Shown here: piece by piece, positions 3,218 to 5,350 of the stretch
Numbering within the stretch: position 1 is the stretch's first letter
Layout: each line of letters opens with the position of its first letter
Assembly (NCBI GenBank): GCA_047495785.1
Contig: JBLDXI010000042.1
Coordinates: 3,596,001 to 3,660,000 of the forward strand
Length of the DNA stretch: 64,000 nt
Direction: 5' to 3'
Source of the DNA: Lepidodermella squamata
Taxonomy: Eukaryota; Animalia; Gastrotricha
Position numbers and translations under genes: made by a program
Notes under the pieces: model-generated
Told to the model about the DNA's origin: nothing
What the model saw: only the letters and a program-made list of their open reading frames with translations
Database searches by the model: none

Positions 3218-4668
3218 GATCGTACCGTGTCGGGCTTGACCAGCGCGGCGAGACTATCCGCGATGACAGCAACAACAGCATCAGCAGGTGACTTGCCTTT
3301 GCCGACATTGTTCGCCGCTGTGAAAGCCGCCACCATCGCCGTCGCCATCGTCTTCAGGATGTCCAGAATGTCCTCCTTGCGGATGACACCGTCGTCGCTA
3401 CCAGTACTCTCTGCCGTCTTCTTCGCCTGCTCGGCCGGCGGGGTCGACTTCTGCTCGGGCTTCTGCTCGGGCTTGCGATCGGCCTTGCCGGCGACGACTT
3501 GACTCCACTTCCTCTTCTCTTCGCAGCCGCCGTAGCTCGCCGAGTGGTCTTTGCCGCAGTTGGCGCAGACCAGGTGCAGAGGCTCCGGGACCACGATCTC
3601 GTCGGTCATCTGCTCAAGGTGGCGTTGCCGCTCCGCCTCGCGCTTCTTCTTCTCAGCTTCGATCGGGCAGGCGCCTAGGACTCGCCGGTCGTGAGGACCA
3701 CTGCAGTTGGCGCACTTCGGCTGCTTCTCAGGACACGCGAGCTCGACGTGGCCGAAACCCTGACACCGGTAGCACTGCCTGGGCTGCAGCTTCTCGACGT
3801 ACGGAACGACCTTCAGAAGCATCGAGCACCAGACAAGGCCAGTATCGAACGCTTTCTTCCGGGCATCTTCACTATTAAATTCAATGACAACTGGGCCATT
3901 GCGGCCGATTTTAGATGGAATTCTAATTAATTTAGAAATACCGTCACCTTTAAGGTCGGTTTCGACTTCGTCTAGCTCGGCCCAGTCGGGAAGGCCGTAC
4001 GTCTTCGCTTTCCAGAGCAAAGGTCGAACCGGTTGTCGCTCGGGTCGTTGGACGGGCCGCTTGGCGTAGTCGCCTGGCTGATGAGACCACGCCTTGCCAC
4101 CAAATGCGTCCGCCGGCCATTTGCCACAGTCGAGGACCTTCGCTTGTCCAGCTGCCGACGTCATCTTCAGGAATAGGCCGCCGTTCTGCATGACTTGCGG
4201 TCTGCCGTAGAGAGCGAACTCGGTGCCGCAGACGCGCCGAAGCTCCTCGAGGATCGCACGATCGCCAGTGATGCCAGACACCCCGTCAATGATGACAGGG
4301 AATTCGGCCATTCGCTTGTTTTTCGGTGCCGGTTTCGGGTTCGGTTTCGGGTTTTGTTTCGGGTTTTGTTTCGGGTTTTGTTTCGGTGCGGCAACCTTTT
4401 GAGCCGCCGCTTCTTCTAGCTTTTTCTTTTTTCTTTCATCTTTCTTGGCCTGCTTCGACTGAGCCGTCCTGAACTCGGTCGGTTCGCCTTCTTCGCCATC
4501 GCCGTTCCTGCTTTTCTTCGCAAGAAAATCGGTTGCGGTTATCGCGTTGTCGTCGTCATCGTTGCGCGCGTCATCATCGGCGCCACGCTTCACGCCACTC
4601 GTCGCCGTTGCGGGGAAACAACAGCAGCTGTTCTCGTCCGGGCAGTTACACGACCGGATAAGGCTCAT
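3151..4668 (-). CDS. LINE ORF1 (gag-like nucleic-acid-binding protein)
   Basis: Three zinc knuckles: CYRCQGFGHVELAC, CANCSGPH..C and CANCGKDH..C. Basic N-terminal region with PKQN/PKPN repeats. Confidence 0.92.
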   Translation of the reverse strand: MSLIRSCNCPDENSCCCFPATATSGVKRGADDDARNDDDDNAITATDFLAKKSRNGDGEEGEPTEFRTAQSKQAKKDERKKKKLEEAAAQKVAAPKQNPKQNPKQNPKPNPKPAPKNKRMAEFPVIIDGVSGITGDRAILEELRRVCGTEFALYGRPQVMQNGGLFLKMTSAAGQAKVLDCGKWPADAFGGKAWSHQPGDYAKRPVQRPERQPVRPLLWKAKTYGLPDWAELDEVETDLKGDGISKLIRIPSKIGRNGPVVIEFNSEDARKKAFDTGLVWCSMLLKVVPYVEKLQPRQCYRCQGFGHVELACPEKQPKCANCSGPHDRRVLGACPIEAEKKKREAERQRHLEQMTDEIVVPEPLHLVCANCGKDHSASYGGCEEKRKWSQVVAGKADRKPEQKPEQKSTPPAEQAKKTAESTGSDDGVIRKEDILDILKTMATAMVAAFTAANNVGKGKSPADAVVAVIADSLAALVKPDTVRSWFAKAPRQPPSSGNNGRTGRR

Positions 4669-4754
4669 CCAACTTCGAACTTGTATCGAGCTTTGAAATT
4701 AGCTTTTACGAACTTTACGAACTTTCACGTAAACTTTCAATTGCGGTGCGAAAT

Positions 4755-4880
4755 GCACCCTTTTTGATAGCAATAATGGAGCGCGCGCCTCATTGGTCAC
4801 CATTTATAAATGTGCGCCCTTTTGATTGGTGGGCGCTCCCGCGCTTTTGTGAGCACCCTTTGCGACTCACACTCGACTCA
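4755..4880. promoter_or_regulatory. Histone-type bidirectional promoter region between the LINE ORF1 and H3
   Basis: Two CCAAT boxes (ATTGG at 4792-4796 and 4825-4829, 33 bp apart) flank TATAAAT at 4805-4811. E2F-like TCCCGCGC near 4837. The motif GCRCCCTTT occurs at about 4755, 4814 and 4853. Confidence 0.65.
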
Positions 4881-4939
4881 TTTGTCGGTTGTATCACTCT
4901 AAATTGAATTTGCATTTTCAATCTAAACCATCATCATCA

Positions 4940-5350
4940 ATGGCTCGTACTAAGCAGACAGCTCGTAAATCGACTGGTGGCAAGGCTCCTCGCAAGCAGT
5001 TGGCGACCAAGGCCGCCCGCAAGTCGGCCCCGGCGACCGGTGGTGTTAAAAAGCCCCATCGTTACCGCCCGGGTACCGTCGCCCTGCGAGAAATCCGTCG
5101 CTACCAGAAGTCTACGGAGTTGCTGGTTCGCAAGCTGCCCTTCCAACGCCTGGTTCGTGAAATCGCTCAAGATTTCAAGACCGACTTGCGCTTCCAGTCG
5201 TCCGCTGTCATGGCGCTGCAGGAGGCTAGCGAGGCTTACCTCGTCGGTCTCTTCGAAGACACCAACTTGTGCGCCATCCACGCGAAGCGCGTCACTATCA
5301 TGCCGAAGGACATTCAGTTGGCCCGCCGTATTCGCGGTGAGCGCGCCTAA
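4940..5350 (+). CDS. H3: Histone H3, canonical replication-dependent H3.2 type, intronless, with an I62V substitution
   Basis: [21 protein letters not shown]...RGERA, 136 codons. A31, S87-A-V-M90 and S96 are diagnostic of H3.2. Confidence 0.99.

Follow-up and report, generated by a model that had tools for sequence, protein, structure and literature searches.

An intact LINE retrotransposon inside the shared promoter of a divergent histone H4-H3 gene pair in the gastrotrich Lepidodermella squamata

A stretch of 64,000 nucleotides from the genome of the gastrotrich Lepidodermella squamata (GenBank assembly GCA_047495785.1, contig JBLDXI010000042.1, forward-strand positions 3,596,001 to 3,660,000; hereafter the window, with positions counted from its first base) was analyzed for the relationship between a long interspersed nuclear element (LINE) and the histone H3 gene that lies head-to-head with it. 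The start codon of the first open reading frame (ORF1) of the LINE, at 4668 on the minus strand, and that of H3, at 4940 on the plus strand, leave a gap of 271 bp (4669-4939), in agreement with the original prediction for this locus. On the far side of the LINE, at the left edge of the window, are the first codons of a histone H4 gene. The features of the locus are listed below in positional order (UTR, untranslated region; TSD, target-site duplication).

1-12, minus strand: start of the histone H4 gene, four codons (MSGR), the remainder of which precedes the window start
13-68, minus strand: putative H4 5' leader with an initiator-like motif, ACTAACAA at 60-67, reading TTGTTAGT in the H4 sense
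69-79, no strand assigned: left copy of the TSD, AATTGCGGTGC, adjoining the 3' end of the LINE
80-4738, minus strand: LINE element, 4,659 bp, with boundaries taken from the TSD
80-286, minus strand: LINE 3' UTR, 207 nt, AT-rich, ending in A6 (the plus-strand T-run at 80-85)
287-3217, minus strand: LINE ORF2, 976 amino acids, apurinic-type endonuclease and reverse transcriptase
3151-4668, minus strand: LINE ORF1, 505 amino acids, gag-like, with CCHC zinc knuckles
4669-4738, minus strand: LINE 5' UTR, 70 nt, with its 5' limit taken from the TSD
4739-4749, no strand assigned: right copy of the TSD, AATTGCGGTGC, adjoining the 5' end of the LINE
4750-4939, no strand assigned: H3-proximal half of the shared promoter, from motif positions and alignment with the related loci L006 and L008 (see below)
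4940-5350, plus strand: histone H3 gene, intact, replication-type, 136 amino acids (Pfam Histone, 4.7e-48)
5372-5416, plus strand: histone 3' stem-loop and palindromic downstream block, with the canonical stem-loop at 5382-5399

Two sets of external sequences were compared with this locus. An exact-sequence look-up of the H3 protein, which is encoded in identical form by many other genomes, yielded three metagenome contigs from the European Nucleotide Archive (ENA) with histone loci, designated L006 (6242-9167), L008 (6251-10470) and L009 (2372-5258). In addition, contigs of three public sequencing runs were aligned to window positions 1-4939: X1, from the same organism as the window; X2, from another organism; and X3, listed under the organism code of the best DNA holder. 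The three related loci are compact quartets of an H4-H3 and an H2B-H2A pair, in which H4 is divergent from H3 across a spacer of 282-319 bp and all four genes are followed by the same stem-loop and palindromic block. The block behind the H3 gene of the window is 91-95% identical to the blocks behind all four core histone genes in these loci, and by sequence comparison this unusual histone 3' element appears to be common to the window H3 and the related organisms.

The H3 gene had been described as solitary, with the LINE occupying the position of its divergent partner and with no H4, H2A or H2B gene anywhere in the 64 kb. A tblastn search of the window, using the H4, H2A and H2B of the three related loci and the H1 of locus L002 from another genome as queries, found no complete H4, H2A, H2B or H1 gene. 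For whole genes the earlier statement is therefore true, but it is misleading, because the partner H4 gene is cut by the window edge. Positions 1-12 (ccgtccggacat), when reverse-complemented, read ATG TCC GGA CGG, encoding MSGR, which we take to be the universal start of histone H4, and an X3 contig lying on positions 2-57 extends leftward and, when reverse-complemented, continues in frame into GKGGKGLGKG, the N-terminal tail of H4. The H4 partner of H3 thus exists, truncated by the window edge, and it lies just past the LINE, which therefore does not stand in for a missing histone gene.

Removing the LINE together with one copy of the duplicated sequence brings positions 13-79 next to 4750-4939 and yields a spacer of 257 bp that aligns with the H4-H3 spacers of L006 and L008. 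The rejoined spacer shares with those of the relatives the ACTAACAA motif, the GC-rich block GAGCGCGCGC, a pair of ATTGG boxes and, close to the H3 start, CATTTGTCGG. The locus is therefore a divergent H4-H3 pair with a shared promoter, in which the H4 start codon lies on the opposite strand, 257 bp from the H3 ATG once the LINE is taken out. The alignment of the gap to histone spacers that had been proposed as a check is thus positive for its H3-side 190 bp, which match LINE-free spacers of the relatives. Most of the promoter elements previously noted in the gap were also found: ATTGG occurs at 4792 and 4825, giving two CCAAT boxes on the LINE and H4 strand that are 33 bp apart and face the LINE, and TATAAA occurs at 4805, within the palindrome ATTTATAAAT. 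The E2F-like sites were not recovered, as the strict consensus TTTSSCGC has no match on either strand of the spacer.

Read in the H4 sense, the H3-proximal half of the spacer also contains a TATA-like box, TATCAAAAAG, at 4760-4769. In the relatives, 34-35 nt separate a TATA-like box from the A of TTAGT downstream of it (manual count), and the distance for TATCAAAAAG here is 37 nt. The ACTAACAA/TTGTTAGT motif is kept in L006, L008 and L009, where it is as far from the H4 start codon as it is here (about 50 nt), and an X3 contig of an H4 paralogue stops at about 57-61, in adapter-like letters that recur at another X3 contig end. On this basis the 5' end of the H4 mRNA is tentatively placed at window positions 57-62. 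With this placement the TSD spans -7 to -17 relative to the H4 initiator A, and the LINE accordingly splits the H4 core promoter, with the TATA-like box and upstream elements on one side and the initiator-like TTGTTAGT on the other. The H3 gene retains 190 bp of promoter, including both CCAAT boxes. A 9-mer, AAATTAGCT (AGCTAATTT in the LINE and H4 sense), is found both at 51-59, at the putative H4 mRNA 5' end, and at 4696-4704, in the LINE 5' UTR; the match extends to 12 of 13 bases, and about 0.4 such matches would be expected by chance for flanks of this size.

The extent of the insertion is defined by its junctions. No direct match between the two LINE flanks (300 bp on the 3' side versus 340 bp on the 5' side) is longer than the perfect 11-bp repeat AATTGCGGTGC, and a match of at least 11 bp anywhere in these flanks arose in 46 of 2000 shuffles (2.3%). 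One copy of the repeat abuts the terminal A6 and the second abuts the 5' UTR, as expected of a TSD, and the proposed search for duplications around the LINE or around the LINE plus H3 thereby returned one that encloses the LINE only. Two X1 contigs join position 56/57 approximately straight to 4744, omitting 4,686-4,687 bases, and the 18 letters at the join are variant copies of window positions 56-73; these contigs are LINE-free spacers in which the duplicated sequence occurs once. In four further X1 contigs the match to the LINE 3' end breaks off exactly at 79/80, and unrelated sequence follows. One X3 contig carries 17 T just before position 80 and derives either from a polyadenylated transcript or from a copy with a longer tail. 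A loose end of an X2 contig at 4917, which is an inverted copy of 4750-4775, was treated as an artefact, given the many opposite-strand joints and low depth of that run. The LINE is inserted alone and in the orientation of H4, because its removal restores a 257-bp spacer that can be aligned with the 282-319-bp spacers of the relatives.

The sequence between the two copies of the TSD has the organization of a complete retrotransposon. ORF2 matches the Pfam families Exo_endo_phos (1.7e-13) and RVT_1 (1.3e-31) and contains the motifs SETW, GDFN, SNH and FADD (residue 747); SNH stands where many relatives have SDH, and is likewise present in the nearest relative, P0004. The reverse transcriptase region matches the structures of L1 ORF2p and R2, and comparison of the endonuclease with solved structures returned matches of the L1 type only, all of them weak (E 0.3-2). 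An RNase H domain was not detected in ORF2. ORF1 overlaps ORF2 by 67 nt in a different frame; no Pfam family scored above the cutoff in it, and a pattern match places zinc knuckles at residues 299 and 368, with a third CxxC...H...C arrangement in between, read from the translation. A 12-nt tandem repeat at 4332-4386 of ORF1 encodes a PKQNPKQNPK... tract, a low-complexity linker. With both reading frames open and the catalytic motifs kept (by ORF call, Pfam and motif search), the description of the LINE as intact holds. In the 3' UTR, AATAAA lies about 20 nt ahead of the terminal A6.

The 5' UTR had been allowed up to about 120 nt, and according to the TSD it measures 70 nt, which is shorter than is usual in LINEs of the Jockey/I/R1 group. 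This stretch contains two copies of a 9-nt tandem repeat, TTTACGAAC, at 4705-4725, and is LINE sequence rather than histone spacer, because an X2 contig, from the second organism, matches it up to 4725, with a third copy of TTTACGAAC. The break of an X1 contig at 4716 would fit a variant with one copy of the repeat. X1 contigs differ from the LINE at 0-1 positions. Transcription of the LINE family is suggested by the poly-T contig of X3 and by coverage in X2, a run taken to be RNA by guess only. Blastn self-comparison revealed no further LINE copies in the 64-kb window, and a tblastn search with ORF1, ORF2 and six relatives identified this LINE reverse transcriptase as the only one that the window contains.

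Several features assign the element to the LINEs with an apurinic/apyrimidinic-type endonuclease (APE), namely a reverse transcriptase with FADD, the N-terminal position of the endonuclease, the A6 end and the 11-bp TSD. The overlapping reading frames, the CCHC ORF1, the APE and FADD-containing reverse transcriptase of ORF2 in the absence of a detected RNase H, the A-tail after AATAAA, the short TSD and the short 5' UTR, possibly with an Inr/DPE-type (initiator and downstream promoter element) promoter, are all shared with LINEs of the Jockey/I/R1 group. In contrast to this general likeness, ORF2 is only 26-28% identical to its best relatives among 5.8 billion proteins, in a collection apparently lacking this genome's own proteins, and the nearest proteins to ORF1 in a protein collection search share 34-38% identity with it along a quarter of the protein (about 35% over that part). 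Placement in the group is by domains and motifs. No match was found in the JGI metagenome contigs for ORF2 or for the 3'-terminal 29-mer of the LINE. By sequence divergence, the lineage appears to be a deep one without close described relatives.

Taken together, the locus is best explained by the insertion, through target-primed reverse transcription, of a young and apparently intact non-LTR (long terminal repeat) retrotransposon of the Jockey/I-group type into the shared promoter of a divergent H4-H3 pair, an explanation that we consider highly probable. In the rejoined 257-bp promoter the first-strand nick fell between window positions 79 and 80; the second lay 11 bp away and so produced the 11-bp duplication. 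The plus strand at the LINE 3' junction (76-94) reads GTGC-T6-GTGCATTTT, and the target primer therefore ends in GTGC, the same tetranucleotide that stands directly ahead of the A-tail in the LINE. This GTGC repeat may be a microhomology used in priming, and it leaves the exact boundary ambiguous by a few bases.

An insertion at this position may have transcriptional consequences for both the LINE and H4. The first base of the LINE lies 31 nt downstream of the T of the H4 TATA-like box and below the CCAAT boxes, and the H4 half-promoter could start or boost transcription within the first few bases of the LINE. The 70-nt 5' UTR could then suffice, because the H4 promoter half would direct initiation at the LINE 5' end. 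Upstream of the H4 gene, in turn, would now come the AT-rich 3' UTR of the LINE, with AATAAAA about 40 nt ahead of the H4 initiator.

A number of considerations weigh against parts of this interpretation. The LINE-free contigs differ by at least 2 bases from the window flank, and may be paralogous rather than allelic spacers. The X1 run, moreover, may be the sample behind the genome assembly, and is hence not independent proof of that assembly. The window contains only the first 12 bases of this H4 copy, and the H4 start site is placed by a conserved motif together with a single adapter-like contig end. As for transcription, the 70-nt 5' UTR could hold an internal promoter of its own of the Inr/DPE type, such as those known from jockey and the I factor, with the repeated AGTTCG units of the 5' UTR as possible internal-promoter elements; the capture of the H4 promoter is something that we infer.

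Flanks of other copies of the LINE are available from the X1 contigs that share its 3' end. The nick here reads GGTGC|GAAAT, and at other copies the flanking sequence terminates in ...ATATAC and ...CAAGG, in a small sample with consensus letters of limited reliability; a target sequence shared at the nick was not found among these few copies, within the same limits of letter reliability. The foreign 3' flanks were evaluated as potential histone leaders by local alignment against the window and the loci of the relatives, with no histone-spacer match above background. One of them had appeared by eye to resemble an H2B leader, a resemblance that was lost in local alignment (its consensus agreement is 0.65 and its letters are unreliable).

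What the insertion reveals about the LINE family can be read in several ways. The original prediction envisaged either a LINE that targets histone promoters or a composite mobile unit of LINE and H3. The composite unit, or its variant in which H3 was transduced by the LINE, is suggested by the closeness of the two head-to-head partners, 271 bp apart, and by a G+C content that is higher in both than in the surrounding DNA. We nevertheless regard it as highly improbable and the composite unit as refuted, since the 11-bp TSD surrounds the LINE alone, at the empty sites the H4 leader still adjoins the promoter of H3, the contigs of other copies run out of the LINE at the A-tail, and the 190 bp on the H3 side align with histone spacers of relatives that lack the LINE. 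Transduction in particular faces the difficulty that H3 is encoded on the other strand and beyond the 5' end of the LINE, where read-through cannot place it.

Targeting is compatible with the structural explanation given above. Here the LINE family would prefer histone start regions, through tethering to promoter factors or chromatin or through an endonuclease preference, and would live off histone promoters; the copy described would be one of several insertions that arose independently, each a short way upstream of a histone initiator. The location of the insertion in the H4 core promoter is in line with this part of the original prediction: the sole LINE reverse transcriptase in 64 kb sits in sense orientation within about 20 bp of the H4 start, and a random hit is unlikely in a genome of about 10^8 bases (a rough estimate) in which histone start regions occupy a few kb. 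The 9-mer AGCTAATTT common to the LINE 5' UTR and the H4 leader could be read in the same direction, but falls within chance expectation. At least four X1 contigs with the same LINE 3' end, however, adjoin flanks unlike the H4 spacer, its paralogues or the histone spacers of relatives; the nick sites of other copies share no sequence; and a bias toward retention in redundant multicopy genes could mimic targeting. The original prediction had itself held that unrelated 5' flanks at other full-length copies would make this a one-off insertion, and the unrelated 3' flanks come close to that situation. The targeting explanation is therefore given somewhat less than an even chance. Its more specific form, in which one or more LINE families insert from a few to about 20 bp upstream of replication-dependent histone initiators, in sense orientation, and use the borrowed S-phase promoters instead of a promoter in a long 5' UTR, is given a marginally lower chance. 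The same unrelated 3' flanks favor a one-off, untargeted insertion that is tolerated through histone redundancy, in which the promoter position is accidental and the LINE has its own internal promoter. That a 70-nt 5' UTR with a variable 9-nt repeat is kept in a second organism is as would be seen for a promoter region owned by the element, and AATAAA with poly(A) marks an autonomous transcription unit; a core-promoter position in sense orientation is, on the other hand, improbable by chance. We place this untargeted insertion about level with targeting, likewise somewhat below an even chance.

Comparison with known systems bears on how a preference for histone genes, if it exists, might operate. 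The LINEs of spliced-leader genes (SLACS, CZAR and CRE in trypanosomatids, NeSL-1 in nematodes) resemble the present case in inserting in sense near the start of a multicopy gene transcribed by RNA polymerase II, whose promoter can drive the element. They employ a restriction-like endonuclease and occupy one exact nucleotide in every copy, whereas the LINE of the window has an APE endonuclease and a protein-coding gene promoter as its target, with a single copy verified at H4. The R1 and R2 elements of ribosomal DNA (rDNA) likewise occupy a multigene family with redundant members and rely on the host unit being transcribed. They do so, however, at a fixed nucleotide inside the 28S gene and by co-transcription with polymerase I, in contrast to a LINE in a polymerase II core promoter whose other copies lie elsewhere. 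Dictyostelium TRE5-A and yeast Ty3 integrate upstream of polymerase III genes by way of promoter-bound factors and not of DNA sequence, a model that would fit a LINE whose insertions precede the initiators of different histone genes by a few to about 20 bp, although the targets of these two elements are polymerase III genes and the factors are TFIIIB and TFIIIC. A literature search found neither a LINE specialized on histone genes nor comparable position targeting at histone genes.

Other observations concern the surroundings of the locus. The G+C content of the LINE is 57-60% and that of the H3 gene is also high, versus roughly 40% across the remaining window. Beginning 270 bp past the H3 stop, 32-bp inverted repeats (5619-5650 and 6955-6986, with 31 of 32 bases matching) enclose a stretch of about 1.37 kb that resembles a small DNA transposon with terminal inverted repeats, for which no clear TSD was seen. 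A degenerate histone 3' block is present at 62792-62830, behind the stop of a G+C-rich ORF; its stem-loop has 3 mismatches and two broken pairs, the downstream TTGCAACAGTGTT is retained, and the block may represent the remnant of a histone 3' end rather than a functioning cassette.

The event verified here is in itself ordinary, a TSD-flanked retrotransposon insertion; what is unusual is its site in a histone core promoter. This result corrects the reading of the H3 gene as solitary. Site-specific LINEs are known to use rDNA, small nuclear RNA (snRNA) genes, spliced-leader genes and telomeres as safe havens. If the targeting proposed above is true, protein-coding histone genes would join these safe havens, and this would be the first LINE lineage specialized on the promoters of protein-coding polymerase II genes. 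Expression of the LINE would in that case be tied to S phase, and the locus would provide a natural system in which to see how a bidirectional histone promoter tolerates being split.

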